From positions 496,001 to 560,000 of the forward strand of contig OZ218962.1 in the NCBI GenBank assembly GCA_965112735.1: a stretch of DNA of 64,000 nt, given 5' to 3'. Below the pieces are notes generated by a model, which had not been told where the DNA came from, made no database searches, and worked only from the letters and a program-made list of their open reading frames with translations. This document shows positions 343 through 60,961 of this stretch, piece after piece (position 1 is the stretch's first letter; each line of letters begins with the position of its first letter). The position numbers and the translations under genes are program-made. The DNA comes from Phaeosaccion multiseriatum (Eukaryota > Protista > Ochrophyta, other classes).

Positions 343-373
<31 letters not shown>

Positions 374-1273
374 AGCAGCAACAGCAGCTTCGCGGCGGTA
401 CTCGTCTTCTACTTCCTCCTCTTCTGCTTCTCGATCACGGCAGCAGCCCCCCCAGAGAGCTACCACCACCACTCACAGATCGACAACCAATACGCGCAGC
501 AGCAACAGCGGCCACAACAAGAGCAGCTCCACATCCGTGCAAGCTCGAACAGTGAGAGGTAGGACAGAGACAGAGACACAAGAGAGAGAGCGCGCACTTC
601 ACCTTTGCTTGACGTGGCTAATGTGAATGGATCGTCGTGGGAAGTTGTCTTTGTTTTTAGAAATGCATCGTAGATTCCCCTCCCCCACTCCCCCCCTTCC
701 CCTTTACTCCACTTGTTTGTGATTGATGACCCATCCGCTCCTGTATTCGTCGTCTCATCTATACCTACTTACTCGCTTCATTCATTGCTTGACTGTGTGC
801 CCCGCGCTCACTTCACAGGACGAAGAAGCTCGGAGATCGTGCGGCCGTCGGCCATCGCGGATCGCAGCAGAGGGTTCACTCCGCGGAGCCACTCCCCCAT
901 GCAACGGGCGTCGGCAAGGGCGGGTGCGGCCCACTATCCCGTGCATTCCCCCTCTTCATCGGTAGGTAGCTCGAGCGCTACTAGCGCCACCATCAGTTGT
1001 GGTAGGAGGAGGAGAAGGACAGAGGCAGCAGGCGGTGGAACAGGTGGTGGGGGAGTTGGTGATACAGCAGCAGGAGGAGGAGGAGTGATGCAGACGAGGA
1101 GAAGCAGAGTCGGGAGCGGCGGCAGCTCCGTCGGGAGTGGTAGCAGTTCCGTCAGTGGGGGCGACAGGTGGGAGAAGGCTGCGAGAAAGGGAGCAGTTGG
1201 TGATACACGTGGCCGCCCTTCCTCTATTCAGCGCCCTACGCCCACTAAGAGGCAGGGAGGATTACCGGATTAG
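1..1273 (+). CDS. 3' part of an unknown low-complexity (S/R/G-rich) protein gene; exons <1-10, 240-558, 819-1273
   Basis: GG|GTAAGG donor at 11, pyrimidine tract and CAG acceptor at 239, G|GTAGGA donor at 559, CACAG acceptor at 818. Phases join in frame (TEG|LTFLVGC...VR|GRRSSEI...GLPD*). No recognisable domain. Confidence 0.5.
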
Positions 1274-1580
1274 CAGCGCAATACATGTGAAAGCTACACC
1301 TACACACTGTAATGGGTAATAGAATAATAGAGGCAAGACGTACCCCCCTCCGAGAGGAAGAAGAGAGTGCGGCACGATGAAACTCACAACTGGCACCCAT
1401 TCGTAATGAACTGCCACTGGAAACTGACCCTCGTCAGCAGGGACAGAATCAGGGACACCAAAGACAACACAGAGAGAGACAAAGAGAGCACAGAGAGAGA
1501 GAGATGAACTAAGCATATATAGATACAAAGAGAGCGAGAGCGCGTGGAAAGACAAAGAGGGAGAGAGGAGAGAGAAAACG

Positions 1581-3065
1581 ATGTTTGTGTCGGCTGCACG
1601 AGGTTTGTTCCGCCGCCCTGCAGCAGCTGCCTACATTCCCTCGGGAAGGGCTCTGTCCACCGCAGCAGCGCCCAAAGTGGTCGTCTTCGGAGGCAACGGT
1701 TTCGTCGGGCAGCGCGCAGTGAGGTGGGTATGACCCCGCTTGGTCCCTTGTTCCCCCAGCCTCTTCTCACTCTGCTCTTGGCCTCCCTCCAAAAGGTACC
1801 TCTTAAACAAAGGGTGCAGCGTGGTGAGCATCAACAGGTCAGGCCAGCCCAGCGGGAAGGGGGGGGTAGACGGCTGGACAAAGCACCCCAACCTCCAATG
1901 GGTAGCCGCTGATGTATTCGAGCCAGAGACATACGCCAGTGAGCTAACTGGGGCTTCAGGTGCAATTCACGCCATCGGAGCATTCGGCAACAACGACTTC
2001 ATGGAGAAGATCTGTGGAGACAGCTGTGTGGAGGCCGTGGCTGCTGCTCATGAGGCAAAGGTGAGGTACATGGAGGTTTTGGGGTGTTGAGAGAGAGAGA
2101 CACAACAAAGAGACAAACCAGAGAGAGACGGATAGGAAGAGGAGGAGGAGAGAGGCGCACCAAAAGGGAGTCTAGTACGAGCGCTTCCGAGTCAAAGCAG
2201 CGTTCGTGGTTACCTCGTTTCCGCGCGTCTCTCTCCCTGTCTCTCTTGTCGTCGTTCTCTCGCCCTCTTTCTATCTCAGTCCTCCTCCTTCTCTCCCTCT
2301 GTCTGTGTGTGTCTGTCTCTCGTCTCATATGTCTCTCTCCCTGTTTCTCCCTCTGACGCTCTCAATCACTCACGTACACACGCGCAGATCAAGGATTTTG
2401 CCTTCATTTCGGCTGTGGGGTTGAAGAAGGACGGAGAGACTCCCCTCCCCGGGGGGCTGCTCAAGGGGTGAGTGACTCCGACAATGAGCAGCTGAGAGGG
2501 GCAGAGAGGGTCGAGAGCGGTGGGGCGGTGTGCTCAGGCCCGCGGCGCGGGGAGTAGTGAGACGAGGGAGAGGCAGAGTGAGACAGCCCTCGAATTAAGG
2601 CAAAGGACAGTCACAACTTTTGATCCCTTCTTGGCCTCTCTACTGCACATCGTGACTCTCTCTTTCTCTCTCTCTTCCCCTTCCCCCAAAACCCCAACCC
2701 AAACTCTTCTTCCAAAAAGGTACTTTAAGGGCAAGCACAAGGCCGAGGCGGCAGTCATGAACACCTTCGGCCCCGTGCACGGCACCTGCCTGCGCTGCTC
2801 CGGCGTATACGGCGACAGAGAGGTGGGCAGGGGCATCTCGCTTCCTCTCGGACTCGTCATGCGGCCAATGGAAGTGCTGCTGTCCCACGCGCCCTTCAGC
2901 GTGCTGACCGGAGCGAGTGGCGGCCTACTCTCCCCGCCCATCAGCGCGGAGTCGGTGGGCAAGGTAGCGGGGCTAGCAGCGATGGGGAAGCTCCCGCAGA
3001 CGGGCGTGCTGGATTTGGATGACGTTAAGCGCCTGGCCGCCGAGGAGGAGAAGGAGGAGCGGTGA
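1581..3065 (+). CDS. Atypical SDR / NAD(P)-binding epimerase family protein, Coq11 (YLR290C)/NDUFA9-like, probably mitochondrial; exons 1581-1723, 1796-2060, 2388-2467, 2720-3065
   Basis: R/A/S-rich N-terminal presequence, Rossmann motif KVVVFGGNGFVG, VSINRSG, FAFISA, catalytic-type YFKGKHKAE, and SPPISAESVG. Three GT-AG introns with consistent phase. Confidence 0.8.
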
Positions 3066-4459
3066 TGGGTGTCAGGTGTCAGGTGTATTGGTGTGTTGGG
3101 GTAGGCGTGTGGGTGTCGGGACTGGACTGCGAGGGACCGCCACCCCCATGCCTGGGGTTAGCGAGCTGGGGCTTTCGAGAGCTGGACAAACAAGGAGGGC
3201 GGGCGGGGGTGGGTCCTCTTCGTTTGGAGGCCGGTGGGCGGCAGGGAGGGCTGGGAAGGACTGGATGGTTAGACAGGAGACAAGGGGCAAGAGCAAGAGC
3301 AGCGAGGAAGGGTGACTCGTGACACCCGGGCTCGAGGCGGCCGAGCCCGCAGAACCCGCTGTAGCTGAGGAGGAGGTGCGAGGACGTGTGTGGCGGTGTG
3401 TGCTCTCCCTCCCTCCCTGTGGCCCCCCTGTTGCCATTCCTCTACTTGGTCTGTATATATATGTATCTCACAGGGTCGGTCAGTGTGGGGAGAGGGGGAC
3501 GGACGGACGGACGGACGGAGGGAGGGAGGGAGGGAGGCACACGCTGCTTCCTTCATTGCTTAGGTTGCGCCTTTTTTCACGTACGCGCGTGGTAGAGGGC
3601 GATGCCATCGACTGCCATCGACTGCCATCGACTGCTACAGTGCCATGAGACAGGCGCAGAGAGGGAGTAAGTCTCCGTCTATTGTCCACTTGGCAGGCAG
3701 AAATTTTGATCATTATTTTATATATTTTTTTATACTGAAGTAGAAGAGAAAAACTTCCTCAGGAGTGAGTGGTTGCGCGCGTGAGCGAGTGGGAATTCAT
3801 GAGTCCGTGGTGCGTGGGTGGGTATGTGCGTGTGTGCGTGAGAGTGAGTAGGTGTGTGCGTGCGTGCGTGCGTGCGTGCGTGCGTGTGTGCGTGAGTGTG
3901 TGGGTAAGTCAAATCCAATACACTAACTGCATCCATAGCTTCCCTTGGTCACGCTTGTCACCCGCCCGATCACCCCAGAGTCTCCTAGCTGCTTGTCGCC
4001 GTCTCCGGCAACCAACCAAGCCCAGCACAGAGCGGCACCTCCTCTCGGTGATGCCTCCATGGATTCCGAAGCTGAGCAGTGACCCAGACGGACGGACGAA
4101 GCATCATATTGAGGGGTCTGCGCGTGGTGAATCTAATGCGGAGAGTGGGATGCCACTGCTGGAGAGGCCCGGAGGCATGCAGAGCGAGACGTTGGAGGGC
4201 ATGGCCGAGGAAATGCGCTGACCCAGAGGGCTGTGTCTGAGAGAGGTGCGAGGGCAGAAGCACGAGTAGCGAGGACGAAGCATCGTTCGCAAGAGGATTG
4301 AGGGCGCGCGCGTGAGCGTGGTGGCGGGAGAGCACCCAGCGTCGCGAGCTGTGAGAAGAAGGCGGTGCTCCTTTCAGGGCGAGGGGCGCTCGGAACGGAG
4401 TCTAGCAGTGGAGCGCCGTGAGGCATCCTCCAGGGCAAGGAGGGAGACGGGGTGAGGTG

Positions 4460-4800
4460 TATATTGGAGCTTATGAGCTCAGAGTAAGATGAGAGAAGTG
4501 GGGGGGGTGGATCCAAAGAAGGGGGGTGAAGCTCGACTGCTTTGAGGCGCACGCGCACACACACATAAAAGGTAGTGAGGTTAGGGACGTGACGTTGCTC
4601 TCGCGCATTGATAACACAGAAAAGCAGCGTGTCATCATCAGAGAGTGCGGGTTACGCTCTGTATTGAGGCTACAAGCGCTCCGTACTCCGTGCTGTTGAG
4701 GGTGCTGTGAGCCACAAGGGCGCCCTACAGATCGGAGTGTGAGTATAAGTTTGTTGGCGCCCCCCCCTCGGGGAATCTCTAGCTGCCAGGAGAGAGAAGT
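4460..4800 (+). repeat. Duplicated upstream (promoter-region) block of the ankyrin unit; other copies at ~9131-9450, ~12174-12500, ~16477-16790
   Basis: Shared sequence from ATTGGAGCT(T/C)ATGAGCTC through CTACAGATCGGAGTGTGAGT is visible in all four copies. Confidence 0.85.
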
Positions 4801-4912
4801 TGTTGTTTTCAGTAGCAAGCGCGATGGTGGCGGCGCAGCGTGAATACCGTCCCTGAGGGCCTCCTGCTGCTAGCCCTGCTACAGGCTTTCTTTCGTCTCT
4901 CGCCGCGCCAGC

Positions 4913-7900
4913 ATGGCCCAGAGCAGCGCAGGACCCCCCCCTCGAGTGAGCGGAGAGGTACGTTTATAGAAGGGAGGGCGGAGCGGAGACAGCTACTATT
5001 GGAAGCGCTTGGTATCGCCGCACTGTTTGTTGAACCGGAGTGTATTCGACGTTGGCAATGCGCGTTATCTTCCCTCTGCCGCATCTTCTCCACTCCATCC
5101 CTGTGGCTGGCAAAGGGCTCGCCCTTAAGCGGGTCTCCTCCCGAGAGCAGTGACTCACCACCCCTCTGGTTTTACGGTCTTTTTGCCTTCCCTGATTCTC
5201 TCCTTCTTCGGCCGATACAAGGCCACGCGCCTCTACAGGGCCATCACTGGGGGGGAAAGCATCAAGAATGTCAAGCGAGCCATCAGCGCCCTCGTCGCTG
5301 AAGAGGGGGGAAGGAAGGCTTGCCTCGACGCCGCGATTGGTGCTGAGGGGTACACTCCAATGACAGCAGCGGCGTTGGGGGGTAGAGCAGACATTGTGGG
5401 GCTTCTATTGGGGGAAGGGGCATCTCCAAACCACGAAGCGATGACTTCTGACGATTGCACACCATTGATAGGGGCTTGCGCACGTGGCCATCTGAACGTC
5501 GTGCAGATACTGATTGAGGCCGGTGCGGATTTGGATCAACCAATTGATAAAGGGACGGCCATGGCTGCAGCTTCAGTCGATGGGCACACAGAAGTCGTCA
5601 GAGCTTTGATCGCGGGGGGCGCCGATGTGAATCGAGCCACGAACAACGGAACTACACCTCTGAGCTTAGCTTCACGGGGCAATTATGAGGGGATTGTGAG
5701 GCTCCTTCTTGCGGCCAATGCGAATGTGAACAAGGCCGCCAACGACGGAAGTACACCACTGGTAATGGCGTCGGTGTACGGTCATGAGGAGGTGGTGAAA
5801 CTGCTCCTCGCGGCCAATGCGAATGTGAACAAGGCCACCAACGACGGAAGTACACCACTGGTGATGGCGTCACTGGACGGTCATGAGGAGGTGGCAAAGT
5901 TGCTTCTTGCCAGCAACGCAGATGTGAACCAACTGAGAAACAGCGGAGCTTCGCCACTTCTTCTGGCTAGCGACAAAGGGCATACAGGGATAGCGAGGCG
6001 GCTACTCGCAGCTGGTGCCGAAGTTGATCCTGTGAGTGCTATGGGAATAACACCTCTCATGGCGGCCGCGCGGCAGGGACACAGTGAGGTATTACGTGAG
6101 CTCATCTCAGCAGGGGCAGACGTGGATACTCATGGCCCGGAGGGCATTACTGCTCTCATATTTGCAGTGGTTAGCGGACACGCTGAGGTGCTGCGTGAGC
6201 TCGTATCGGCAGCGGCAGACTTGGATCGACATGACAACCTCGGCCGTACTGCTCTGCACTACGCTGCCCGCGCCGGACATGGGCATGCCCTGCACATCCT
6301 GCTCACGGCCGGGGCTGAGGTGGATGCAGCCAATGATATGGGGACTACTGCGCTCATATTGGCTGCGCTTAATGGAAACGCTGAGGTGCTGCGTGAGCTC
6401 ATCTCAGCAGGGGCAGACGTGGATCGACATGACGCGGAGGGGGATACTGCTCTGCACTACGCTGCTGAAGCCGGACATGGGCATGCCCTGCACATCCTGC
6501 TCAAGGCCGGGGCTGAGGTGGATGCAGCCAATGATAAGGGGACTACTGCTCTCATGGAGGCAGCGCAACATGGACACACCGAGGTGCTGCGTGAGCTCCT
6601 ATCGGCAGGGGCAGACGTGGATCGACGTGACGCGGAGGGGGATACTGCTCTGCGCTACGCTGCTAGCGCCGGACATGGGCATGCCCTGCACATCCTGCTC
6701 ACGGCCGGGGCTGAGGTGGATGCGGCCAATGATAAGGGGGGTACTGCTCTCATGACGGCAGCACACCACGGACACGCTGAGGTGTTGCTTGAGCTCCTAT
6801 CGGCAGGGGCAGACGTGGATCGACATGACGCGGAGGGGTTTACTGCTCTCATGATGGCCACAGAGAGGGGATACGCTGAGGCTCGGTGTGAGCTCGTATC
6901 GGCAGGGGCAGACGTGGATCGACATGACGCGGAGGGGGATATTGCTCTGCGCTACGCTGCTGAAGCCGGACATGGGCATGCCCTGAACATCCTGCTCACG
7001 GCCGGGGCTGAGGTGGATGCAGCCAATGATGAGGGGACTACTGCTCTCATGATGGCAGCGCAACATGGACACACCGAGGTGCTGCGTCAGCTCCTATCGG
7101 CAGGGGCAGACGTGGATCGACGTGACGCGGAGGGGGATACTGCTCTGCACTACGCTGCTGAAGTCGGACATGGGCATGCCCTGCACATCCTGCTAGAGGC
7201 CAGGGCTGCGGTGGATGCAGCCAATGATAAGGGGCTTACTGCTCTCATGATGGCAGCGGGCCGTGGACACGCTGAGGTGATGCGTGAGCTCGTGTCGGCA
7301 GGAGCAGACGTGGATCGACATGACGCGAAGGGGGATACTGCTCTGCGCTACGCTGCTGAAGCCGGACATGGGCATGCCCTGCACATCCTGCTCACGGCCG
7401 GGGCTGAGGTGGATGCAGCCAATGATATGGGGACTACTGCTCTCATGGAGGCAGCGCAACATGGACACGCTGAGGTGCTGCGTCAGCTCCTATCGGCAGG
7501 GGCAGACGTGGACCGACGTGACGCGGAGGGGGATACTGCTCTCATGATGGCAGCGATTAATGGATACGCTGAGGCTCTGCGTGAGCTCCTATCGGCAGGG
7601 GCAGACGTTGATCGACATGACGTGAACGAGACTACTGCTCTGCACTACGCTGCTAGAGTCGGACATGGGCATGCCCTGCACATCCTGCTCACGGCCGGGG
7701 CTGAGGTGGATATCGAGGATGACATCGGAAGAACTCCCCTCCTCTACGCAGCATACCACAATCGTGGAGGGGCGATGCACGAGCTTCTCTGCGCAGGGGC
7801 GTCTGTGGGCAAGGCTCTGACTGCTGCTCGAGAGCTTGGTGTCCTGCGAGAGGTCCGTGATCGTCTTCTGATGGCAGACAAGCGATGCTTTGACTCCCAG

Positions 7901-8062
7901 AGCCCTGCGGACATTATGCGGACGTGCGACTCGACCTTCGGCAAGGAGAGGGGCCTACCGCCGCAGGAGAGGGGAGTGTCTTCCGTCAATGTGCTGGAAG
8001 TGGCTGCAGGCATGCGTGGAGCCGACGACGCTTCCAGGTGGGCGAAGCAAGACACGCATTGA
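4913..8062 (+). CDS. Ankyrin-repeat protein, array copy 1 (~961 aa, 25 ANK repeats plus conserved C-terminal tail); exons 4913-4957, 5222-8062
   Basis: Exon 1 MAQSSAGPPPRVSGE|GTACGT; branch-like TGACTCAC at ~5151, pyrimidine tract, AAG acceptor at 5221; exon 2 is in frame with the long ANK ORF (GxTA/PLxxAAxxGH repeats). Confidence 0.88.
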
Positions 8063-8908
8063 AAAGGGGAGAGAGATCACGGCCTCGAAGCGAGCGAGGA
8101 GGGGGGTGTGGGGGGGGGGGGGGTTGGAGTGCACACTCGCCAGTGGGACTGTGGATGCAAGCGTCGGATGGAATAGATTAGTTGGAGCACCAGCCACGGA
8201 CAGGCGGGCAGCGACACAGACAGATGGAAGTGTGGAGAAGGTGGCGGAATGAGAACGAGGCCAGCGATGGAGCAGCAGCACGGCACGACGGGGGAAGGTG
8301 GGATGGCACTGTGTGGCTAAAGAGAGTGCACCACAGGGCAAGGAGAGACAAGCGCATCGAACGCCTTCGCATTCACCGCAGCCGACGGGGGGAGCAGCAG
8401 CCCTCTTTACTGCAGCTGGTGGTACTTGGTGTAGCCAAAGGGAACGGAGGATAGCATGGTGTGGGGTACACGGGAAAGGGAGAAAGAAGCCAACCCGTTT
8501 GATGAGGGAGTGGCTTAGATGTGCAGGCATCGGCAGGGCGGGATGCAGCCGCACTCTCGGCAAGAGAAAGCGGCCGTGGGTAGTACATGAAGCAGGGGAG
8601 AGGGAGAGCAATGTTTAGTATGCATGGTGTGAGAGGGTAGTAGAGGGTGCGAAAAGGTGGCCCCGCGTGAGCTCTGCCCACCAGGCATCGGGGACGATAA
8701 ATGTACTCACTGTCAGGGTACTTTGCTGGCAATTTAGCCCCCACCCCACTCTCGCAGCGCGTCCGCTATGAAAGAAGGAACCAACTCCCTTGGCAACTCA
8801 TCCACACCCTCTTTCTCGACTCTGTGTGCCTTCGAGGCCTGCATCCTCCATCCGAGGGCTCGTCATCCACAAGAGAGACAAGGCCGGAGTTTGAGTATAC
8901 ATTTCTTG
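8063..8908 (+). repeat. Duplicated downstream block of the ankyrin unit; near-complete copy at ~11134-11958, short remnants after copies 4 and 5
   Basis: Direct sequence similarity ending at GGAGTTTGAGTATACATTTCTTGG in both copies. Confidence 0.85.
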
Positions 8909-9564
8909 GGGAGGGGGGGGGGGGGGGATGGCTCGGGGAGGAGGTGGAGGGTGCACCCACTCTATGGCAATGATATAGTGTCTCTGCGTTTTACTTTTCT
9001 CCCCCAATGTCGACTCCATCGATGCTAAATGTCGAGCTGCCCTCCACTTCCCTACTCGTGCCTCATCAAGCGCAATCACTAGGTTAGGCGGCCTGCGCAG
9101 ACGTCCTCTCCTCCTGTCTTGTCACTGCCCTATTGGAGCTTATGAGCTCGGGGTAAGATGAGTGTAGTTGAGGGGGAGGGAAATAAAGAAGGGGTGTGAA
9201 GCTCGACTGCTGTGAGGCGCACGCGCACACACACGAAAGGTAGTTAGGTTAGGGACGTGACGTTGCTCTCGCGCATCGATAATACAGAAAAGCAGCGTGT
9301 CATCATCAGAGAGTGCGGGTTGCGTACTCCGTGTTGTTGAGGGTGCTGTGAGTCACAAGGACGCCCTACAGATCGGAGTGTGAGTACAAGTTTGTTGGCA
9401 CCAGCCCCCTCCGCCCCCGGGGGAATCTCTAGCTGCCGGGAGAGAGAAGGTGGAGTTGTTTCAGCAGCAAGCGCGATGGTGGCGGTGCAGAGTGAATACC
9501 GTCTCTGAGGGCCTCTTGCGGCCAGCCCTGCTACAGGCTTTCTTTCGTCTCTCGGTGCGCCAGC

Positions 9565-11133
9565 ATGGCCCAGAGCAGCGGAGGACCCCCCCCTCGAGTG
9601 AGCGGAGAGGTACGTTTATAGAAGGGAGGGCGGAGACGGGGCAGCTACCATTGAAAGCGCTTGGTATCGCCGCACTGTTTGTCGAACCGGAGTGCATTCG
9701 ACGACTTTGGCAATGTGCGTCATCTTCCTTCTACCGCTTCTTCTCCACTCCATCCCTCTGGCTGGGAAAGGGCTCGCACTTAAGCGGCTCGCCTCCCGAG
9801 AGCAGTGACTCACCGCCCCTCTAAATCCCCAACCTTTTCCTCCCCCCTCGCTCTCTCCTCTCTCGGCTGACACAAGGCCAAGCGCCTCTATGACTCCATC
9901 AGCGGGAGGAAGACTATCAAGAACGTCAAACGAGCCATCAGCGCCCTTGTCGCCAAAGAGGGGGGAAGGAAGGCTTGCCTCGACGCCCCGATTTGTGCTG
10001 ACGGGCACACTCCAATGACTGCAGCGGCGACGATGGGTAGAGCAGACATCGTGGGGCTTCTATTGGGGGAAGGAGCATCTCCAAACCACAAAGCGGTGAC
10101 TCCTAACATCGTCACACCATTGATGGGGGCTTGTTCATGTGGCCATCTGAACGTCGTGCAGATACTGATGGAGGCCGGTGCTGATTTAGACCAAGCAGGT
10201 GACATGGGGACGGCCTTGAGTGTGGCCTCAGCCGATGGTCACACAGAAGTCGTCAGAGCTTTGATCGCGGGGGGCGCCGATGTGAATCGAGCCAACAACG
10301 ACGGGGCTACACCTCTGTTTACGGCGTCACTGTACGGTCATGAGGAGGTGGCGAAGTTGTTTCTTGCCAGCAACGCAGATGTGAACCACCTGAGCAGCGC
10401 CGGAGCTTCGTCACTTCATGTGGCCAGCAGCCGAGGGCATGCAGGGATAGCGAGGCGGCTACTCGCAGCTGGTGCCGAGGTGCATGCAGCTGATGATGAC
10501 GGAATGACACCTCTCATGGTGGCCGCGGGGCTGGGACACAGTGGGGTATTACGTGAGCTCATCTCAGCAGGGGCAGACGTGGATCGACATGACGCGGAGG
10601 GGACTACTGCTCTCATGGCGGCAGCGCAACACGGACACGCTGACGTGCTGCGTGATCTCGTATCGGCAGGGGTGGATGTGGGCCGAACTGACAACCACGG
10701 CCTTACTGCTCTGCACTATGCTGCGAGGGACGGACATGGGCTTATGCTGCACCTCCTGCTCGGGGCGCGGGCTGAGGTGGATAGCGAGGATGACATCGGA
10801 AGAACTCCCCTCCTCTTCGCAGCACACAAGAATCATGGAGGGGCGATGTACGAGCTTCTCTGCGCAGGGGCGTCTGTGGGCAAGGCTCTGACTGCTGCTC
10901 GAGAGTTCGGTGTCCTGCAAGAGGTCCGTGATCGTCTTCTGATGGCAGACAAGCGATGCTTTGACTCCCAAAGCCCTGCGGATATGATGCGGACGTGCGA
11001 CTCGACCTTCGGCAAGGAGAGGGGCCTACCGCCGCAGGAGAGGGGCGTGTCTTCCGACAACGTGCTGGAAGTGGCCGCAGGCATGCGCGGAGCCGACGAC
11101 GCTTTCTGGCGAGCAAAGCAAGACACGCAGTGA
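9565..11133 (+). CDS. Ankyrin-repeat protein, array copy 2 (~433 aa, 9 ANK repeats); exons 9565-9609, 9877-11133
   Basis: Same exon 1 (MAQSSGGPPPRVSGE|GTACGT) and same acceptor (CACAAG|GCC) as copy 1; open frame into the ORF at 10015. Confidence 0.85.
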
Positions 11134-12016
11134 AAAGGGGAGAGCAATCATGGCATAGAAGCGAGCGAGGAGGGGGATGTGGGGGGGGGGGGTTGGAGTG
11201 CACACTCGCCAGTGGGACTGTGAGTGCAAGCGTCGGATCGAAGAGATTAGTTGGAGCACCAGTCATGGACAGGCGAGCAGCGACACAGACAGACGGAAGT
11301 GAGGATGGCGGAATGAGAATGAGGCCAGTGATGGAGCAGCAGCACGGCACGACGGGGGAAGGTGGGATGGCACTGTGTGGCTAAGGAAAGGGGAGCGCAG
11401 GGCCAGGAAGGGCGAGCGCATCAAACGCCTTCGCATTCACCGCAGCCGACTGGGGGGGGCAGCGGCTCTCTTCCCTGCAGCTGGTGGCACTTGGTGCAGC
11501 AAAAGGGTACGGAGGATAGCATGGTGTGGGGTATCCAGAAGCCAACCCGTTTGATGAGGGAGTGGCTTTGATGTGCAGGCATCGGCAGGGCGGGATGCAG
11601 CCGCACTCCCGGCAAGAGAAAGCGGCCGTGGGTAGTACATGAAGCAGGGAGAGGGAGAGGAATGTTCGGTATGCATGGTGTGAGAGGATAGCAGAGGGTG
11701 CGGAAAGTTGGCTCCGCGTGAGCTCTGCCCACCAGGCATCGGGGACGATAAATGTACTCACTGTCAGGGTACTTTGCTGGCAATTTAGCCCCCACCCCTA
11801 CTCTCGCAGCGCGTCCGCTATGAAAGAAGGAACCAACTCCCTTGACAACTCATTCACCCTCTTTTTCGACTCTGTGTGCCTTCGTAGCCTGCATCCTCCA
11901 CCCGAGGGCTGTCATCCACAAGAGAGACAAGGCCGGAGTTTGAGTATACATTTCTTGGCATAGGAAGTTGCCGCGCTCCGGGCGGGTGGAGCGGGAGTGG
12001 CATGGCTCGGGAGGGT

Positions 12017-12071
<55 letters not shown>

Positions 12072-12618
12072 ATATAGCTGCCCTGCCTGCGCTAGCTTCC
12101 CTAAATCTTAGAAGGGAAGAGGGGCAGCAACACACAAGACAGGCTCGTCTCTCCTCCTGTCTTGTCACTGCCCTATTGGAGCTCATGAGCTCGGAGTAGG
12201 ATGAATGTATTTGAGGGGGCGGATCCAAAGAAGGGGGGTGAAGCTCGACTGCTTTGAGGCGCAGGTAGTTAGGTTAGGGACGTGATGTTGCTCTCTCGCA
12301 CGGGTACAATGGATAATACAGAAAAGCAGAGTGTCATTTTCATGAGAGTGCGGGTTGCGCTCTGCATTGAGGCTACAAGCGCTCCGTACTCCGTGTTGTT
12401 GAGGGTGCTGTGAGCCACAAGGGCGCCCTACAGATCGGAGTGTGAGTATAAGTTTATTGGCACCCCCCCGGGGGAATCTCTAGCTGCCAGGAGAGAGAAA
12501 GTGGCGTTGTTTCAGTAGCAACAAGCGCGATGGTGGCGGTGCAGAGTGAATACCGTCCCTGAGGGCCTCCCGCTGCTAGCCCTGCCACAGGCTTTCTTTC
12601 GTCTCTCGGTGCGCCAGC

Positions 12619-13258
12619 ATGGCCCAGAGCAGCGGAGGACCCCCCCCTCGAGTGAGCGGAGAAGGTATGTTTACAGAAGGGAGGGCGGAGCGGAGGCAGC
12701 TTCTATTGGAAGCGCTTGGTATCGCCGCACTGTTTGTTGAACCGGAGTGCATTCGAAGACTTTGGCAATCGGTGTTATCTTCCCTCTGCCGCTTCTTCTC
12801 CGTTCCATCCCCCTTGGCTGGCAAAGGGCTCGCTCTTAAGCGGCTCGCCTCCCGAGAGCAGTGACTCACCGCCCCTCTGGTGCTCCGGCTCTTCAACCCC
12901 CCCTCGCTCTCTCCTTCCTCGGCCGACCCAAGGCCACGCGCCTCTATGACGCCATCCGCGGGAGGAAGACTATCAAGAACGTCAAACTAGCCATCAGCGC
13001 CCTTGTCGCCAAAGAGGGGGGAAGGAAGGCTTGCCTTGACGCCGCGATTTGTGCCGACGGGCACACCCCAATGACAGCAGCGGCGATGAAGGGTAGAGCA
13101 GACATCGTGGGGCTTCTATTGGGGGAAGGGGTATCTCCAAACCTCAAAGCGATTACTCCTGAGGTCCGATTTGAGCGTTGTGCAGATACTGATGGTGGCC
13201 GGTGCTGATTTCGATCAAAGCAACGATTGGCACGGGGACGGCCTTGAGTGCAGCTTCA
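12619..13258 (+). pseudogene. Ankyrin-repeat array copy 3, pseudogene
   Basis: An extra A before the exon 1 donor (GAGAAG|GTATGT) shifts the phase; deletion/frameshift in repeat 2; homology stops at ~13258 within repeat 3. Confidence 0.8.
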
Positions 13259-14118
13259 CTGTAGCTCCTGAAAGGACACTTCGAGCTGCCCAGCACTCGG
13301 CTGACAATTTATCCCTCAAGTGTTCTCAAGGGTTTCACATCTCGTGGTCTGCTGGTCGCACACGCTCCTCCCTCTCCTCACCATTTTTGAGGTGAAAACT
13401 GCTGCCATCAGTGTTTCCATCTCGCCTCACCCCTTCTGCTCCACAGCACCTGCAATCGCACTCTTAGCTGCTCAACGTCGACTTCCATATGTGGGTCTCA
13501 GTCTTCTCAAAGCCATTCCTCCCTCATGGGCTCTTGCTCGCACACGCTCTTCCCCCACTCCCCCCTTGTTTGAGGCCCAAATTCCCGCCAAAGCAACGGA
13601 CATTTCAGCTCCACATGTTAGCCCACTATCTCCTAAGACCGCACTCCCAGCTTCTCATCGGCTATTTGACTACATAATCCGTATTAAGCCCGAAGATCAT
13701 CACTTCTTGTGTGAGCTACGCCTCTCTCTTTCTCCCTTGTTCAGGGGCAAAGATCTCGTCAACATATCAGCACATTTCACCTCCTAAATCGCTCTATACA
13801 GACGCAACAATCAGACTTTAAGCTGCTCAACATCTACAATTCTGTCTATACCTCAGATCTCCCGAAGAGCTTCGCCTGTGGTGCTCTGTAGCGTGCGTAG
13901 TGCCTCTTTTCCTGAGCCCACTCCAAATGTGGATTCTACTGACATCCAGGGCGGTTAATTGACACACAAGGGCGGGCCGGGCGGCCCCCTCTCCATCTGC
14001 CTCTTTCCCTGCTGCTCTCTAAGAGCGCGGAGAACGTTCCTCTTTCTAACACTTCTCCCCCACAGGGCGGCTCGTGGATCATCCCCCGCCCGGCCTCGGG
14101 GCGGCTGGTGCCTCCATC

Positions 14119-15789
14119 ATGCAGAGCCCAACCTTCAGCAGAGAGGTAAGCCACAGCCCTTTGTATGGCCATGCCTTCTGTTCCGGGGCCGAAGTGGTCC
14201 GACGCTGAACCGCGTTGCCTTCCCTCGGTGGAAATGTTATATTTCTCACACACCCCTTCCCATCGCCGTGACTTGCGTTGCCGGCCTCCCTTCGTCTCCC
14301 CTTGATCTTCGCTGGAGGGCAAAGGTCTCTGCTACAAGCGGGTCGCCTCCCAAGAGCAGTGACTCACCACCCCTCTTGTTTTCCACCCTTTTTGCCCCCC
14401 CTCGCTCTCTCCTCCCTCGGCCGACACAAGGCCACGCGCCTCCACGACGCCATCCTCGGGAGGAAGACTATCAAGGACGTCAAACTGGCCATGAGCGCCC
14501 TTGTCGCTAAAGAGGGGGGAAGGAAGGCTTGCCTTGACGCCGCGATATGTGCTGACGGGTACAACCCAATGACTGTAGCGGCGTTGGGGGGTAGAGCAGA
14601 CGTTGTGGGGCTGCTATTGGGGGAAGGGGCATCTCCAAACCACGAAGTGATGATGACTCCTGACGATTGCACACCATTGATAGGGGCTTGCGTATGTGGC
14701 CATCTGAACGTCGTGCAGATACTGATCGAGGCCGGTGCGGATTTGGATCAACCTTTTGGCGCAGGGACGGCCATGGTTGCAGCTACATCCTATGGGCACA
14801 CAGAAGTCGTCAGGGCTTTGATCGCGGGGGGCGCCAATGTGAATCGAGCGAGGAACGACGGAGCTACACCTCTGATCTTCGCTTCACAGGCCAATTATGA
14901 GGGGGTTGTGAGGCTCCTTCTTGCGGCCAATGCGAATGTGAACTTGGCCACCGACGACGGAAGTACACCACTGCTATTGGCGTCGAAGTACGGTCATGAG
15001 GAGGTGGCGAAGTTGCTTCTTGCCAGCAACGCGGATGTGAACCAACTGAGAAACGACGGAGCTTCACCACTTCTTTTGGCCAGCAACCAAGGGAATGCAG
15101 AGATAGCGAGGCGACTACTTGCAGCTGGTGCCGAAGTTGATCCTGTGAGTGCTATGGGAATAACACCTCTCCTGTCGGCAGCGCACTGTGGACACGCTGA
15201 GGTATTACGTGTGCTCATCTCAGCAGGGGCAGACGTGGACCGACATGACGCGGAGGGGGGTACTGCTCTCATGGTGGCAGCGGATAAGGGACACGGTGAG
15301 GTTCTGCGTCAGCTCGTATCGGCAGCGGCAGACGTGGATGGACGTGACAACCTCGGCCTTACTGCTCTGCACTACGCCGCGAGGGGCGGACATGGGCTTA
15401 TGCTGCACCTCCTGCTAGAGGCGGGGGCTGAGATGGACAGCGAGGATGACATCGGAAGACCTCCCCTCCTCTTCGCAGGATACGAGAATCATGGAGGGGC
15501 GATGCACGAGCTTCTCTGCGCAGGGGCGTCTGTGGGCAAGGCTCTGACTGCTGCTCGAGAGCGTGACGTCCTGCAAGAGGTCCGTGATCGTCTTCTCATG
15601 GCAGACAAGCGGTACTTTGACTCGCAAAGCCCTGCGGACATTATGCGGACGTGCGACTTGGCCTTCGGCAAGGAGAGGGGCCTACCGCCGCAAGAGACGG
15701 GCGTGTCTTTCGAGACCATGCTGGAAGTGGCCGCAGGCATGCGCGGAGCCGACGACGATTCCAGGTGGGCGAAGCAAGACACGCATTGA
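14119..15789 (+). CDS. Ankyrin-repeat protein, array copy 4 (~461 aa, 10 ANK repeats); exons 14119-14145, 14431-15789
   Basis: Alternative exon 1 MQSPTFSRE|GTAAGC, same acceptor CACAAG|GCC, intact ANK ORF and conserved tail. Confidence 0.85.
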
Positions 15790-16965
15790 AAAGGGGAGAG
15801 AGATCACACGGCCTCGAAGCGAGCGAGGAGGGGGGGAGGGTTACTTGTTGTGGCAGGAGGGTATGGGGCGGTGCCCCAGCCAGGGATGCAGCAGCAGCGG
15901 CAGCAACAATTACACCGACTACGACAGCAGCAGCTACATCAGCGTGAGCACCAGCAGCACGAACAATCTGGGCAGGGGCAGAATGCGTCATATCAGGCCA
16001 TGAAGAGCGGTATAGCGGCGACAGGAGCAGGGACAGGGAGCGAGTTTTCGCTTGGGATGGGCGGCAGCAGCTTTGCAGGAGGAGGAGGGGGAGGAAGAGG
16101 GGAAAGGGCATCAATATGGGGGGGGGGGAGGGAGCCTCTAAAGTGGGGTGCCACTGCTGGAGAGGCCCGGAGGCATGCAGAGCGAGACGTGGGAGGGCGT
16201 GGCCGAGGAAATGCGCTGAAGCAGAGGGCTGTATCTGAGAGAGGTGCGAGGGCAGAAGCACGAGTAGCGAGGACGAAACGTCATGAGCAAGCGGATTGAG
16301 GGGCGTGAGCGTGGTGGCGGGAGAGCACCCAGCGTCGCGAGCTGTGAGAAGAAGGCGGTGCGTGCTCTTTTCAGGGCGCGGTGTCTGCCATCGGAACGGA
16401 GTCTAGCAGTGCAGCGCCGTGAGGCACACTGAGGAGGGAGGAGGGAGGAAGGAGGACGGAGAGGGGGGGAGGTGTACATTGGAGCTTATGAGCTCGGGGT
16501 AAGATGAGAGAAGTAGGGCGGAGCGGATCCAAAGGAGGGGGGTGCAGCTCGATTGTTCTGAGGCGCATGCGCACGCACACGTAAAAGGTAGTAAGGTTAG
16601 GGAGTGTTTTTGAGGACGGGTACAATGGATAACACAGAAAAGCAGCGTGTCATCATCATGAGTGTGGGGGTTATGCTCTGCATTGAGGCTACAAGCGCTC
16701 CGTAGTAATCCGTGTTTTTTTCTCGAGGCGTCCTGCTCTACAGATCGGAGTGTGAGTGTAAGTTTGTTGGCACTAGCTCCCCCCCCCCCTTCAACCCCCT
16801 GACACTGCTACCACATTTAGCAGATAGCACACCGTCTAACTACACGATTCTTTCCCTGCTGCTCTCTATAGCGCGGAGAGCTTTCCTCTTTTTTACGCTT
16901 CTCCCCCCACAGGGCGGCTCGTGGATCATCCCCCGCCCGGCCTCGGGGCGGCTGTTGCCTCCATC

Positions 16966-18659
16966 ATGCAGAGCCCAACCTTCACCAGAGAGGTAAGCCC
17001 CTTTGTATGGCCATACCTTCTGTTCCGGGGCCGAATTGGTCCGACGCTGAACGGCTTGGCCTTCTCTCGGTGAATGTAAGACTTCTCCCCCCTTCCCATC
17101 GCCGTGACTTGCTTTTGAACTTCTCACTCTGCCGACCTCCCTTCGTCTCTCTCCCCTTGATCTTCGCGGGAGGGCAAAGGTTTCTGCTATAAGCGGGTCG
17201 CCTCCCAAGAGCAGTGACTCACCACCCCTCTTGTTTTCCACCCTTTTTGCCCTCCCTCGCTCTCTCCTCCCTCGGCCGACACAAGGCCACGCGCCTCCAC
17301 GACGCCATCCTCGGGAGGAAGACTATCAAGGACGTCAAACTGGCCATCAGCGCCCTTGTCGCTAAAGAGGGGGGAAGGAAGGCTTGCCTTGACGCCGCGA
17401 TTTGTGCTGACGGGTACAACCCAATGACTGTAGCGGCGTTGGTGGGTAGAGCAGATGTTGTGGAGCTTCTATGGGCGGAAGGGGCATCTCCAAACCACGA
17501 AGTGATGATGACTTCTGACGATTGCACACCATTGGTAGGGGCTTGCATGCATGGCCATCTGAACGTCGTACAGATACTGATTGAGGCCCGTGCGGATTTG
17601 GATCAACCAATTGGCGCAGGGACGGCCTTGAGTGCAGCTTCGACCTATGGGCACACAGAAGTCGTCAGAGCCTTGATCGCGGGAGGCGCCAATGTGGACA
17701 AGGGCGACGACGACGGATATACACCTCTGATCTTCGCTTCACAGGGCAATTATGACGGGGTTGTGAGGCTCCTTCTTGCGGCCAATGCGAATGTGAACAA
17801 GGCCACCAACGACGGATATACACCACTGGCAATGGCGTCGAAGTACGGCCATGAGGAGGTGGTGAAGTTGCTTCTTGCCAGCAACGCAGATGTGAGCCAA
17901 CTGAGAAACGACGGAGTTTCGCCACTTCATATGGCTAGTGGCACGGGGAATACGGGGATTGCGAGGCGACTACTCGCAGCTGGTGCCGAAGTTGATCCTG
18001 TGAATGCTTTAGGAGTAACACCTCTCATGATGGCCGCACACCACGGACACGCTGAGGTGCTGCGTGAGCTCGTATCGGCAGGGGCAGATTTTGATCGACA
18101 TGACGCGCAGGGGTTGACTGCTCTCATGGCGGCAGCGAATGGTGGACATGGGCTCCTGCACATCTTGCTCAAGGCCGGGGCTGAGGTGGATATTGAGGAT
18201 GACATCGGAAGAACTCCCCTCCTGATCGCAGCATACCACAATCATGAAGGGGCGATGCACGAGCTTCTCTGCGCAGGGGCGTCTGTGGGCAAGGCTCTGA
18301 CTGCTGCTCGAGATCCTGACGTCCTGCAAAAGGTCCGTGATCGTCTTCTGATGGCAGACAAGGGATACTTTGACTCGCAAAGCCCTGCGGACATTATGCG
18401 GACGTGCGACTCGACGTTCGGCAAGGAGAGGGGCCTACCGCCGCAGGAGAGGGGCGTGTCTTCCGAGACCATGCTGGAAGTGGCCGCAGGCATGCGCGGA
18501 GCCGACGACGACTCAAGGTGGGCGAAGCACGAAACGCATTGCAAATGGGAGAAAGATCACGGCCTCGAAGCGAGCGAGGAGGGGTGTGTGGGTGGGGGGG
18601 GGGGTGGAGTGCACACTCGCCGGTGGGACTGTGACTGGAGAAAGGAGGCAGGAGATTGA
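16966..18659 (+). CDS. Ankyrin-repeat protein, array copy 5 (~466 aa, 9 ANK repeats; family stop codon TGA changed to TGC, extending the C-terminus); exons 16966-16992, 17286-18659
   Basis: Exon 1 MQSPTFTRE|GTAAGC; intact ANK ORF; CAT TGC AAA where copies 1 and 4 have CAT TGA AAA. Confidence 0.83.
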
Positions 18660-19307
18660 CCCGCCTTCTCTGCTCAAAGCCTCACAAATACTCTACATAA
18701 ATTGCAAGTTCAGATAATAACATAAGACGGAAAATGACAAAAAATAATCAGCCGCTTCGGTGAAGCGCCGCCCCCAACCACTTGACGACATAAGCCTCGC
18801 CCCTCTCGCCCCTCTCTCCCTCTCGTCCCTGGGGTCAGAAGAAGGAAGGCAACCGACAAAAAGAAAAAGAACAGAAGAAGCCTTTCACAACCAACAAGTG
18901 TTGGCTCGTGTGCGCTTGCTTGTGCTTTTTGCTTACTTTGCACACGAGGCAACGCTCTCCGTTGAGCTCATTCCTCATTTGTCGCCTGTCTTCCTCCTTC
19001 TGAACCCCCCCCCCCCCCCCCCACCTCCTTCGTCGACGTCATCATACCCCCGTAACGAAGCCATTGGCTTCCTCTTCTCTGTCGTCCATGAGACAACCCA
19101 GAAGGGCCACGAAACTATCGTGACCAACAAACTGCCTGTGAAGGACAAGACCAGCTAGTGACTTGACTCATGCGTTCCCAGAGAGTTGAATTGGGAGTGG
19201 CGAACAGGACAGGAGAGGACGGAGCTAATGGGCAGGATAAAAGCATTCAAGGGGGTAGCAGTTAGCTCACAGCAGGTGGCCCAGTCACCCCAGCACCCAC
19301 TGACTTA

Positions 19308-22300
19308 CTAATCGCCCCCGTTCCAGTCAAAGAGCCCCTTCACCATGTCCTCCATAAACGACATGAAATCCTTCATGCCCACCGGGGAAGAGCTGTCCTC
19401 CCCCGCTTGCTGCCGCCGTCGAAGCTGTAACGCCCTCTCCTCTGCCGCCATACGCTCGATATCCTCCTCTCGCCGCCCTTGCCCCTTCTCCTGCCCTCCC
19501 CCTCGTCTCTTGCTCGCAGCAGCTTGCGCCAAAGCCAGACGCCTCTTGCGATAGTTTTGCTCTGCAAAGGAAGGGATGGATGGGTGTGTGGGGTGCGTTG
19601 GGTACAGTGAGTTGGGGTTGGATTGGATTGGGTTCTATTGGGTTGGGTTGGGTTGGGTGGGGTGGTGAGAGAGTGTAAGGCAGCTTGTGATGTGAAGGTG
19701 GGAAAAGGGGGAGGTAAAAGAGGCACACACATGTATGCCAGAGGACGTGCGAAGCGCCAGAGAGAGGACGAGCCTTCGAAATGAGGAGAAGGGCATAGGA
19801 GAGAGAGGAAAGCCTTCGGAGACAGGAGAGAGCCTGCTGCTACGGTTACATGCGTCTGAAAGACCCGACCTCGAGGGGTGCAGTCCCGGATACTCAACAC
19901 AAGCCACACGACACTCTCACGACACACTTTGTGCAACGATGCACACGCCGCCAACTCACCCGAGGCGTAGGCGACGACGAGGCCTCCGTGGTGGGGCAGG
20001 GGCACCTTCTCCACCGCCCCGCCGGAGAAGCCCGCCACCTTGCACATGGCAGCAATCTCCGTCAGAGAGTACGCCCCGCCTTCCTTCGCCAGGACCTGCA
20101 GGCGTTGGTGATACAGCCGTAGTAGCAGCAGCAGAGCATGTTGTGAGTAGACCACAGACGCGTGTTGTCGTGAGGTGGTATAATGCACAAGTGGAGCACA
20201 GGAGAGCATTGAACGGACTGACTGACTGAGGCATTGACTATTGTCTTCCTCATTGCATCACTACATCACTCACTCACTCACTCACTCACTCACCAGCTGT
20301 GTAGTGTCCAGCAGCACTCCTCTCTGGCATCGATTCTCGTCAGCAACCTGCGGCAGCATTCGCGACACATTAGCGGCAGCAGTAGCAGCAGGTCCCCGAG
20401 AGGGCAGGAATGAACAAACGAAGCACGCGTATACTGTGATTAGTCTCAGAAGCAGCGTATGAGCGAGGCAAGCACGACAGCGGAGGACTGGGGGTGGGTC
20501 GGGGTGGTTAGCTGTCTCCTCTCCCCTCTCCCCTCCTCCCCCCCCCCCCCCGTTCTCACCGATCTCTCGTACACATAGACGGCGCCATCCTCGTTGAGTG
20601 TACTCCTCAGCCTCCTCAGCGTCGCCACCCCGTCATTCCTGCCCATCCGGTGAACCACATCTTGCAGCAACACAGCGTCATAGTACCCCTTCCCCTTGAG
20701 CTGCTCCTTACTCTTTCCTCTCGTCACATCCCCGGCAAGCCCCGTCCACGTGCTGACTTTCCCCCTCCCTCTAGGGGCGCTGGCGGTTCCACCCGCCTCG
20801 TCCTTGTTGTTGTCCGGGTGGGTGAGGACGGTGAGGCCTGCGCTTTGAGCGTTGTGAGAGGCCACGTCGAGCACCTCGGGATTGTCCATTGCCGTTACGG
20901 ACACCCCCTGGGGGGAGAAGGACAGTAAGGCAATGGGAGAATGACAACAAGGAAACAGGGCAAGCATGAGTGTGCGTGTGCGTGTGTGTGTGTGTGCGTG
21001 TGTGTGTACGCTCCTCTGTCACCCCAGCGTGCCAATGGGGTCTCGCCCACGCGCGTACCCACGCACCCACGCACCCACGCACCCACGCACCCACCCACCC
21101 ATGCACCCACGCACGCACTCACGTCAAGGAGCTTGGCCACGCTGATGCCGAACTGACCGTGGCTCGCCCGTGCGTCGAGAACAGCGGCGCCAACCTGTGA
21201 GGCGAGGCCAGGCACCACCAGACACCAAACACCAGGTACAAAAGCATCGGCCCAGCCCAGGGATACGGAAGGCAAGTGTAGTGTGTGTGCGTGCGTGAGA
21301 GAGAGAGAGAGAGGGAGAGAGAAAGGACAAAGGCATGGGTTGGAGCCTTCAAAGCAGGATCGACTGGGGATCGATCCACTACACACTGAAACCTCAACTT
21401 TGAAAGTTGTAGGTGGCTTGTAGCTTACCTTGGGCACCCCCTCCATGGTGGAGAGCGTCCTGTCCAGTGCCATCTGAGCGAGCATGGGGCCGCTCGTCTG
21501 CGCTACGAGGTCTCCAAAGGCTTGAGCACACTTCACCTGACAAGAGGAGGAGGAAGATGGCAGTGGATGGAGGAAGAGGAGGAGGAGGAGGAAGAGGAGG
21601 AGGAGGAGGAGGAGGAGGAGGTGGTGGTGGATGGTGGATGGGAGTGGACGAATGGAGGAGGGGGAGGAGGAGGAGAGAGGGGACTGATAAGAGAGGCGGA
21701 GGGCTCTCCAATCCTCCCCCCCCCCTCGCCCCTCCCCCCCCCCCTCAATCTCACCCATATGCCCGGCGCCATGGCGGTGATGGGCCTGAGTGCCGCCCCT
21801 GTGTGCGCCGCTCCCATGAGGTCTGTCAGCAGGCGGCTGGAGTACTCCTCCGATGTATACCAGTCTGAGCACGCACGCACACACACACACACACACATAT
21901 ACACATCGGCATCAGGGCGAGGCAGGGCAGGGGAGGAGGAGGGCGGTGGAGGTGAGAACCACAGCGTTTCCCGGGCCGGAAGAAGAAGACGAAGAAGAGA
22001 GGGGACAAGAAGCGCCCGCAACCCGCCCCGCTTTGACCTCGGCCTCTCGGCCTCTCGCAACACTCACCGACGACATTGCCCATATACCTGGGGCTATCTT
22101 TGCTGAGGAAAGCGGCGCTGCTGGGCGAGAGATGATATCGCGGTAGGGGCGTGAGTGCCGCTGTCGCCACAGCTCCCACTGCCCCCGCTGCAGCCACCAC
22201 CACCGCCGCTGCTTCCCCTTCGACGTCCCTCTCGCCGCTGCTGCTGTCGCTGCTGCTGCTGTCGCTGCTGCTGCTGCTTCCACTGCCGCTACTACGGCCA

Positions 22301-27335: not shown

Positions 27336-27366
<31 letters not shown>

Positions 27367-60929: not shown

Positions 60930-60961
<32 letters not shown>

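Follow-up and report, generated by a model that had tools for sequence, protein, structure and literature searches.

Why should neighbouring ankyrin genes that keep their scaffold in common differ most sharply at the residues that line the binding groove of the encoded proteins? This question is raised by an array of ankyrin-repeat (ANK) genes on contig OZ218962.1 of the ochrophyte Phaeosaccion multiseriatum (assembly GCA_965112735.1), which occupies positions 4913-18659, plus strand, of the 64,000 nucleotides (nt) analysed here (contig positions 496,001 to 560,000; hereafter the window, in whose numbering all coordinates are given). Self-comparison resolves the array into five tandem paralogs, i.e. 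four intact two-exon genes (g1, g2, g4 and g5) and one truncated pseudogene (g3). In the intact genes, the groove residues of the ANK repeats change at several times the rate of silent sites, and the framework of the repeats (helix 2 and loops), the N-terminal cap (N-cap) and a C-terminal tail of 81 residues are under purifying selection. The data thus support diversifying selection on the binding face in a family with birth-and-death evolution, and we consider it probable that these genes form a lineage-specific tandem family of soluble, intracellular ANK-only proteins, in which every paralog would combine the common scaffold with a binding specificity of its own.

How is the array built? Five direct copies of the 5' part start near positions 5086, 9741, 12797, 14295 and 17150, and four copies of the 3' tail lie at 7675, 10746, 15402 and 18155. 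The identity of g1, g2 and g3 reaches about 450 nt upstream, and that of g1 and g2 also about 850 nt downstream, whereas the similarity of g4 and g5 to g1-g3 is limited to exon 2, the final ~110 nt of the intron and a stretch of ~45-90 nt behind the stop codon. The array thus comprises two subfamilies that differ in their 5' ends. The spacers between the genes measure 1.2-1.5 kb and are indel-rich where compared. As a separate observation, a ~550-nt non-coding segment upstream of g1 (4144-4685) recurs between g4 and g5 (16142-16704) with 85% identity (93% over the first 160 nt), so that simple unit-by-unit duplication does not fully explain how the array was built.

The two-exon model was obtained by aligning the 5' regions of all five copies, and exon 1 and intron 1 are inferred from the sequence. 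Exon 1 is short, and its ATG is conserved; in g1, g2 and g3 both the ATG and the 5' splice site are conserved. Intron 1 is of the GT...AG type, 264-293 nt long, and contains a conserved element with CTCAC, a polypyrimidine tract and a CAAG/ acceptor (slashes mark splice sites), behind which exon 2 begins in phase 0. As the stretch of 39 codons from the acceptor to the first ATG within exon 2 is free of stops in all five copies and has a dN/dS of ~0.3-0.6 (ratio of nonsynonymous, dN, to synonymous, dS, substitutions per site), this part is coding and requires an upstream ATG. A coding read-through of the intron, which would give a hydrophobic N-terminus, was rejected due to in-frame stops in g1, g2, g3 and g5 (TAA upstream of the acceptor; in g2 a TGA three codons before it). 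The models encode 961, 433, 461 and 466 amino acids (g1, g2, g4 and g5, respectively), with 25, 9, 10 and 9 ANK repeats, 53 in total, in a strict 33-residue register. A preliminary description of this array, made by reading the sequence, had already named five tandem paralogs with these repeat numbers, and the gene models agree with it.

The proteins of the four intact genes match Pfam Ank_2/Ank with E-values of 1e-51 to 1e-159, and the Pfam scan of the array open reading frames (ORFs) returned ANK families only, with no NACHT, NB-ARC or other domain. The P-loop motif GxxxxGK[ST] is absent from all six frames of window positions 1-19500, and the early statement that no NOD/GTPase domain is encoded is thus borne out. 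The same holds for the absence of signal peptides and transmembrane segments, as judged by a hydropathy scan only and no dedicated predictor: the N-termini are hydrophilic, and the maximum Kyte-Doolittle hydropathy KD(19) is 1.29-1.66 and always falls within ANK helices. A whole-protein search with g5 in a collection of 5.8 billion proteins gave generic ANK proteins only, with at most 43% identity; as nothing near-identical turned up, the proteome of the source is not represented there. Could the source then be a parasite or symbiont, and the genes host-directed ANK effectors that diversify against host targets? Tandem arrays of fast-evolving ANK-only genes are a typical feature of large DNA viruses and intracellular bacteria, but the hydropathy scan gave no recognisable export signal either, the introns are of the spliceosomal type, the G+C content of the array genes, overall and at third codon positions (GC3), equals that of the surrounding eukaryotic DNA, and the viral, metagenome and prokaryote collections that were searched contain no relative. 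We therefore regard an effector origin as very improbable.

Where do the paralogs differ, and is this more than ANK repeats do in general? ANK repeats generally vary most at positions 2, 3, 5, 13, 14 and 33, also at 32 and 17, and the first six of these are the positions that are randomised in designed ankyrin repeat proteins (DARPins; PMC1261162). A location of variable residues at these positions is therefore expected, and it is the rate relative to neutral sites that discriminates. Repeats were aligned by positional homology and compared pairwise by Nei-Gojobori counting (NG86), using the six DARPin positions as pre-specified surface; these and all further selection tests cover the four intact sequences of the single window. 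At the six positions, dN is 0.28-0.66 versus a dS of 0.13-0.35, and the framework has a dN/dS of 0.33-0.65. Coding dS over whole genes is 0.16-0.27; relative to it, surface dN is 1.7-3.4 times as high, and the lower bootstrap bound exceeds 1 in five of the six pairs. Non-coding yardsticks agree with dS, as the divergence K of the intron is 0.174 for g1-g2 and 0.085 for g4-g5, and that of the g1-g2 flanks 0.094-0.096. All these pairwise tests are independent of any tree. The constant parts had been called nearly identical, which is overstated in view of 85-88% DNA identity between paralogs and a dN of 0.08-0.12 in the framework and 0.05-0.11 in the tail.

The profile along the repeat locates the changes more precisely. 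With the pooled proportion of synonymous differences (pS, 0.169) as reference, the proportion of nonsynonymous differences (pN) is highest at positions 13 (0.51), 14 (0.48), 5 (0.35), 10 (0.34) and 9 (0.29), followed by 3 (0.27), 2 (0.25), 1 (0.23) and 32 (0.20), and does not exceed 0.10 at positions 6-8, 11, 12, 15, 16 and 18-31. The hot positions thus are the beta-turn (1-5 and 32) and one face of helix 1 (9, 10, 13 and 14), and position 33 is cold (0.154). The idea that the variable positions are the DARPin binding face therefore holds for positions 2, 3, 5, 13 and 14 (pN 0.25-0.51) and fails for 33, and positions 1, 9, 10 and 32 have to be added. Of 1,107,568 possible six-position subsets, only 92 have a nonsynonymous load as high as that of the DARPin positions (p = 8e-5). 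At hot positions, 62% of the codon pairs differ, versus 24% elsewhere. The same positions are hot among the internal repeats of g1, with a surface dN of 0.61 in repeats of type A versus a framework dS of 0.06. The examples in which the pattern had first been noticed, i.e. ACAR/ACSC/ACVC/ACMH in repeat 2, LLLASDK/LHVASSR/LLLASNQ/LHMASGT and LMAAARQ/LMVAAGL/LLSAAHC/LMMAAHH, are exact.

Codon models agree with this. The likelihoods (fixed-class GY94 and the site models M0, M1a and M2a) come from an implementation of our own and not from PAML or HyPhy, and owing to recombination their p-values are indicative only. In the fixed-class model, omega (dN/dS) is 3.85 at the surface, 0.76 in the framework and 0.56 in the non-ANK parts (N-cap and tail), and the likelihood-ratio test (LRT) of the surface omega against 1 gives 2dlnL = 72.6. 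M2a is preferred over M1a with 2dlnL = 91.9 and places 12% of the sites at an omega of 9.6. Of 31 sites with high posterior, 29 are inside repeats, mostly at positions 14, 13, 5, 2, 9, 1, 3 and 10. Two outcomes that had been named in advance as speaking against the proposed reading, a dN/dS of at most 1 at the variable sites and a variation spread evenly over the fold, did not occur: dN/dS at the groove positions is well above 1, and the variation is concentrated at the beta-turn and the helix 1 face.

What role does gene conversion play in this pattern? The paralogs are mosaics in which the closest pair shifts between blocks: g4 and g5 are most alike in the N-cap, g1 and g2 in repeat 1 and again in the TPLMAA repeat, g1 and g4 in repeat 2, and g2 and g4 in the type A repeat. 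It follows that gene conversion is at work, and p-values of site models are not trustworthy. The qualitative conclusion of groove diversification is nevertheless strengthened by the mosaic. Hot and cold codons alternate every 3-20 nt, and even in blocks whose frameworks differ at only 1 of 69 nt, the hot codons have remained distinct, frequently at two or three bases. As a conversion tract cannot skip interleaved hot codons, copies that lost their groove residues must have been removed, or the changes must have been fixed very fast. In principle, a neutral artefact might be considered, in which the surface is simply unconstrained (omega ~1), conversion resets framework and silent differences, and dS is underestimated. 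This agrees with the proven conversion, with the fairly high omega of the framework (0.33-0.76) and with the fact that the same positions are the most variable ones in all ANK repeats (PMC1261162), but codons 1-5, 9, 10, 13 and 14 would have to be spared by tracts within a 99-nt repeat, which is not feasible unless selection purges the copies that lose hot codons. Moreover, the unconverted g1-g2 yardsticks given above (intron and flanks) are 3-6 times below the surface dN of 0.60 of this pair, and the ORFs have been kept open. A neutral origin thus appears highly unlikely.

In g3, which had correctly been recognised as dead, exon 1 has a 1-nt insertion and repeat 2 a 32-nt deletion, there is also a 4-nt insertion, and the 3' part is lost, as homology stops near 13258. 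All indels in the intact coding sequences are multiples of 3 nt (99-nt repeats, a 3-nt linker codon and an in-frame repeat fusion). The fusion is found in g5, where a type B repeat is joined with one of type A into a single unit of 32 residues; in addition, the family stop of g5 is changed from TGA to TGC at 18540-18542, which adds 40 codons (18540-18659) that correspond to the 3' flank of the other copies and hold a glycine run. In g1, repeats 10-24 form an expanded internal array with Tandem Repeats Finder periods of 99, 198, 297 and 495 nt at 86-91% match and with higher-order units of 198 and 495 nt; the 66-residue A+B units are on average 82% identical (range 74-91%), and the short paralogs have no such repeats. 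In a neutral simulation with 5-8% divergence per lineage, the joint probability that none of the four ORFs is broken was only ~4e-4 to 3e-6, and omega of framework and tail is below 1; the idea that the four long copies are pseudogenes or evolve neutrally was therefore rejected. With tandem duplication, the death of g3 and the change in repeat number, the proposed birth-and-death character of the family is supported.

Could the hot codons owe their diversity to a mutational mechanism rather than to selection, for example to short templated conversion from a large genomic reservoir of family members? Multi-base replacements, which had been noticed before, make up 38% of the differing codon pairs at hot positions versus 22% elsewhere, and they cluster at the adjacent codons 13-14 and 1-3. 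Also, an identical helix-1 15-mer is present in the non-homologous repeats 7 of g5 and 15 of g1. CpG hypermutability was rejected, as CpG transitions account for only 5-15% of the differences at hot positions versus 19-23% elsewhere, and the transition/transversion ratio is lower at hot sites. A templating of hot codons by other repeats of the window was likewise rejected for the distinct N-terminal repeats, which have no donor there; exceptions are cases of identity by descent and the internal array of g1. Donors outside of the window would need an identical framework together with different hot codons, which is the same pattern on a family-wide scale and would again require selection. We know of no germline mechanism of templated hot-codon diversification for ANK genes, and a purely mutational explanation is in our view very improbable.

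Do the hot positions face a groove? An AlphaFold2 model of exon 2 of g4, built from an alignment of 46 sequences, has a mean predicted local distance difference test score (pLDDT) of 88, with 93-99 across the repeats, and paired helices in every repeat; a single-sequence model was discarded (pLDDT 59.5). It shows the repeats as one continuous predicted ANK solenoid with N-terminal capping helices, in which repeat positions 7-14 form helix 1 and 17-25 helix 2. Positions 9, 10, 13 and 14 have the i, i+1, i+4, i+5 pattern of one helix 1 face, and positions 1-5 and 32 are in the hairpin loop; beta-turn/hairpin and this helix face are the canonical concave groove of ANK domains (PMC1261162, PMC4986451). 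The first ~27 residues of the tail are modelled as two further helices on the last repeat, and the final ~45 residues have a pLDDT below 50. The best Foldseek match is Ankyrin-B (AnkB) repeats 13-24 (TM-score 0.78/0.85, root-mean-square deviation 2.5 Å), the Ankyrin-R (AnkR) D34 region was also found, and DARPins are among the top matches; a sequence search of the PDB concurs.

The constant tail is 84-90% identical between paralogs at the amino acid level, with a dN/dS of 0.27-0.65. It contains no Pfam domain at E<=0.01, including F-box, PRANC and SOCS-box, and a word-indexed search found no homolog. An exhaustive HMMER profile search over 1.84e9 representatives gave a single match, a spurious 12-fold repeat artefact, and scans of JGI metagenomes, IMG/VR and GTDB genomes with back-translated patterns gave nothing real. 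A second constant element is found in the intron. This stretch of ~41 nt (from 5127 in g1) is the most strongly conserved part of the whole unit, with 37 of 41 columns invariant; across the five copies, the dead g3 among them, the 25-mer core shows 0-1 mismatch, with 0 matches expected by chance, and the intron outside of it is unalignable between the subfamilies. The element contains a possible branch point and the motif TGACTCA, which we take to be a bZIP/AP-1-type site. A 24-mer of it had 0 matches in metagenome contigs.

A constant tail under purifying selection next to a variable groove resembles adaptor architectures, and the conflict that drives groove diversification may have nothing to do with pathogens. 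Self/non-self or mating recognition, the suppression of selfish elements or meiotic drivers, or substrate receptors that act via the tail (e.g. in a ubiquitin ligase) could be considered, and the finding that no signalling or NOD domain is encoded fits with this, as does the presence of allorecognition genes among the fungal hypervariable repeat proteins (PMC4986451). On the other hand, Pfam gave no F-box, PRANC, SOCS-box or further adaptor motif at E<=0.01, the tail has no homolog in the searches described above, and no feature of the window ties the array to mating-type or drive loci. Such non-pathogen conflicts are thus a minor but real possibility.

How might the system work? In the family of ANK-only proteins that we favour, diversity arises by tandem duplication, loss of copies such as g3, in-frame gain or loss of 99-nt repeats and gene conversion between paralogs, and conversion homogenises the framework while the groove codons stay different. 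The variable groove would recognise fast-evolving ligands, a different one for each paralog, and the constant tail, partly helical and partly disordered, may link all paralogs to a partner or location that they share. An intracellular conflict would be the likeliest setting for this, i.e. the recognition or neutralisation of proteins of pathogens, viruses or selfish elements, and the proteins would then correspond, without a NOD, to the hypervariable ANK, TPR and WD domains of fungal NLRs. That they are pathogen or virus sensors, as had been suggested, is plausible but less likely than not, as allorecognition, the control of selfish elements, variable substrate adaptors and, with lower probability, host-directed effectors would leave the same signature, from which a sensor cannot be told apart here. 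More speculative still, and rather doubtful at present, is the view that these stand-alone solenoids constitute a germline repertoire of intracellular “natural DARPins” in a protist or alga, each directed at a different protein of a pathogen, virus or selfish element and all signalling or neutralising via the orphan 81-residue tail; this would be an innate recognition system in which NOD, GTPase, TIR and kinase domains are all absent.

Several points weigh against the favoured explanation. The sample is small, with four sequences from one window, and g4-g5 taken by itself is a borderline pair (ratio 1.72, bootstrap 0.93-2.87). For the codon models our own implementation was used, and the evident recombination inflates the LRTs of site models, which makes the fixed-class and M1a/M2a p-values unreliable. 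General ANK variation sits at the same positions, so that the location alone is not special. Exon 1 and the intron are predictions from the sequence, and with respect to the tail, its C-terminal half is modelled at a pLDDT below 50 and it has no homolog.

The surroundings of the array are listed in Table 1. The window has ~59% G+C and is depleted of CpG (observed/expected 0.62) and TpA (0.63), with an AG/CT excess of 1.33; cytosine methylation in the source genome would be compatible with the CpG depletion. Long ORFs are few, and the genes of the window are therefore interrupted by introns. Microsatellites are very many and long, and pure micro- and minisatellites of exceptional length make up a sizeable share of the window. 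ORFs neighbouring the array have only fragmentary Pfam matches; among those directly flanking it, the ORFs scanned gave no Pfam match at E<=0.01, and the ORF at 2520-3065 has no match in the collection of 5.8 billion proteins. The ORF that matches TANGO2 is probably one exon of a TANGO2-family gene, and from motifs seen by eye (FFGGGTPS..., ...GYDHYEISNYGKPG...) we read the radical-SAM gene as HemW/RSAD1-like. No tRNAs, Rfam families or telomere-type arrays were found in the window.

Table 1. Features of the array and of the remaining window (slashes mark splice sites)
Feature	Positions	Strand	Remarks
g1 exon 1	4913-4957	+	15 codons, ATG...GAG/GTACGT; putative model
g1 intron 1	4958-5221	+	264 nt, polypyrimidine tract, then CAAG/
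g1 exon 2	5222-8062	+	39-residue N-cap, 25 ANK repeats, 81-residue tail, stop
g1 expanded internal array	6233-7717	+	repeats 10-24, types A and B mostly alternating
g2 exon 1	9565-9609	+	15 codons, GAG/GTACGT
g2 exon 2	9877-11133	+	9 ANK repeats, without NYEG repeat
g3 dead 5' fragment	12619-13258	+	broken off in repeat 3
g4 exon 1	14119-14145	+	9 codons, ...GAG/GTAAGC
g4 exon 2	14431-15789	+	10 ANK repeats and tail
g5 exon 1	16966-16992	+	9 codons, GAG/GTAAGC
g5 exon 2	17286-18659	+	9 ANK repeats, one fused; 40-residue extension
Conserved 81-residue tail	g1 7817-8059; g2 10888-11130; g4 15544-15786; g5 18297-18539	+	
Conserved intronic 25-mer core	5143-5167; 9798-9822; 12854-12878; 14352-14376; 17207-17231	+	
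ORF fragments upstream of array	1734-2087; 2520-3065	+	NAD(P)-binding-type by eye
ORF fragments downstream of array	19373-21018	-	methyltransferase-like by eye
ORF fragment matching Pfam TANGO2	26889-27767	-	E 6e-9, model positions 133-175
Second multi-exon ankyrin-repeat gene	41334-43950	+	unrelated to array; ~30-36% identical to array proteins
Radical-SAM gene exons	60324-63189	-	Pfam Radical_SAM weak, E 1.7e-4, for 61767-62246
(GTCA)148	33239-33831		
(TCTCCC)82	41854-42347		inside or adjoining second ankyrin gene
(CCCT)126	44002-44512		
22-mer x36	45134-45926		
(GGA)274	49146-49968		
(CTGACC)67	50612-51016		

What would such an array mean? Hypervariable surfaces on repeat scaffolds are a hallmark of recognition, as in plant and fungal NLRs, lamprey VLRs and the ROCO and NB-ARC-TPR proteins of brown algae, but these known examples add signalling or anchoring parts, whereas the array encodes ANK repeats and an orphan constant tail only. 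In the literature, our searches turned up no ANK-only tandem family that carries such a signature. If the genes are a recognition repertoire, the tail would be an undescribed output module, the proteins would be naturally selected ANK binders with variable positions beyond those of the DARPin design (9, 10, 1 and 32), and the locus would be a compact example of how duplication, repeat slippage, conversion and selection jointly create specificity. If they are not immune genes, the array still marks a strong intracellular evolutionary conflict.

Comparisons with known systems help to delimit what is special about the array. In poxvirus ANK/PRANC proteins and metazoan ASB proteins (ANK-SOCS box), a variable ANK domain is followed by a short conserved C-terminal module, and the array proteins have a like architecture, with a tail in which no F-box, PRANC or SOCS-box signal was found. 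The membrane-binding domain of Ankyrin-B/R, which provides the best structural superposition as well as the best PDB sequence match, has an elongated groove that binds extended peptides. These ankyrins are, however, conserved multi-domain adaptors with 24 repeats, unlike the fast-evolving ANK-only paralogs described here, and the identity is ~28-30%. The LRR-ROCO and NB-ARC-TPR families of Ectocarpus, which have been proposed to be immune receptors because of their fast-evolving repeats and clustered duplication (Zambounis et al. 2012, PMC3341825; PMC11378527), share with the array the protist/algal origin, the fast repeats and the clustered duplication. They possess GTPase or NB-ARC domains and shuffle exons of one repeat each, whereas in the array all repeats reside in one exon and there is no NTPase domain.

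With DARPin libraries (Binz et al. 2003/2004, in PMC1261162), the array has in common the constant, consensus-like framework, the capping repeats and the variation at positions 2, 3, 5, 13 and 14. In contrast to DARPins, hypervariability leaves out position 33 and includes positions 1, 9, 10 and 32, the modules differ from repeat to repeat, the solenoids comprise 9-25 repeats instead of 2-3 internal ones, and their diversity is of natural origin, i.e. due to duplication, conversion and selection.

The closest known behaviour is that of the ANK domains of fungal NLRs, which consist of highly conserved repeats in variable number (high internal conservation being defined as >85% identity over >=100 amino acids), with positive selection on the inner helices and the hairpin (PMC4986451). 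The array differs in that it has neither NACHT or NB-ARC nor an N-terminal effector domain, so that its genes do not belong to the NLR/STAND proteins, and also in that its ~8 N-terminal repeats are individually distinct and not internally conserved, its diversity is spread over tandem paralogs, and an orphan conserved tail is attached to the C-terminus. The genomic setting with long microsatellites, introns of the length given above and a low gene density is likewise unlike that of fungi. The similarities are the positive selection at concave-face positions of the repeats, the variation in repeat number, and the reshuffling or concerted evolution of near-identical repeats, in which repeats 10-24 of g1 resemble the fungal domains closely.

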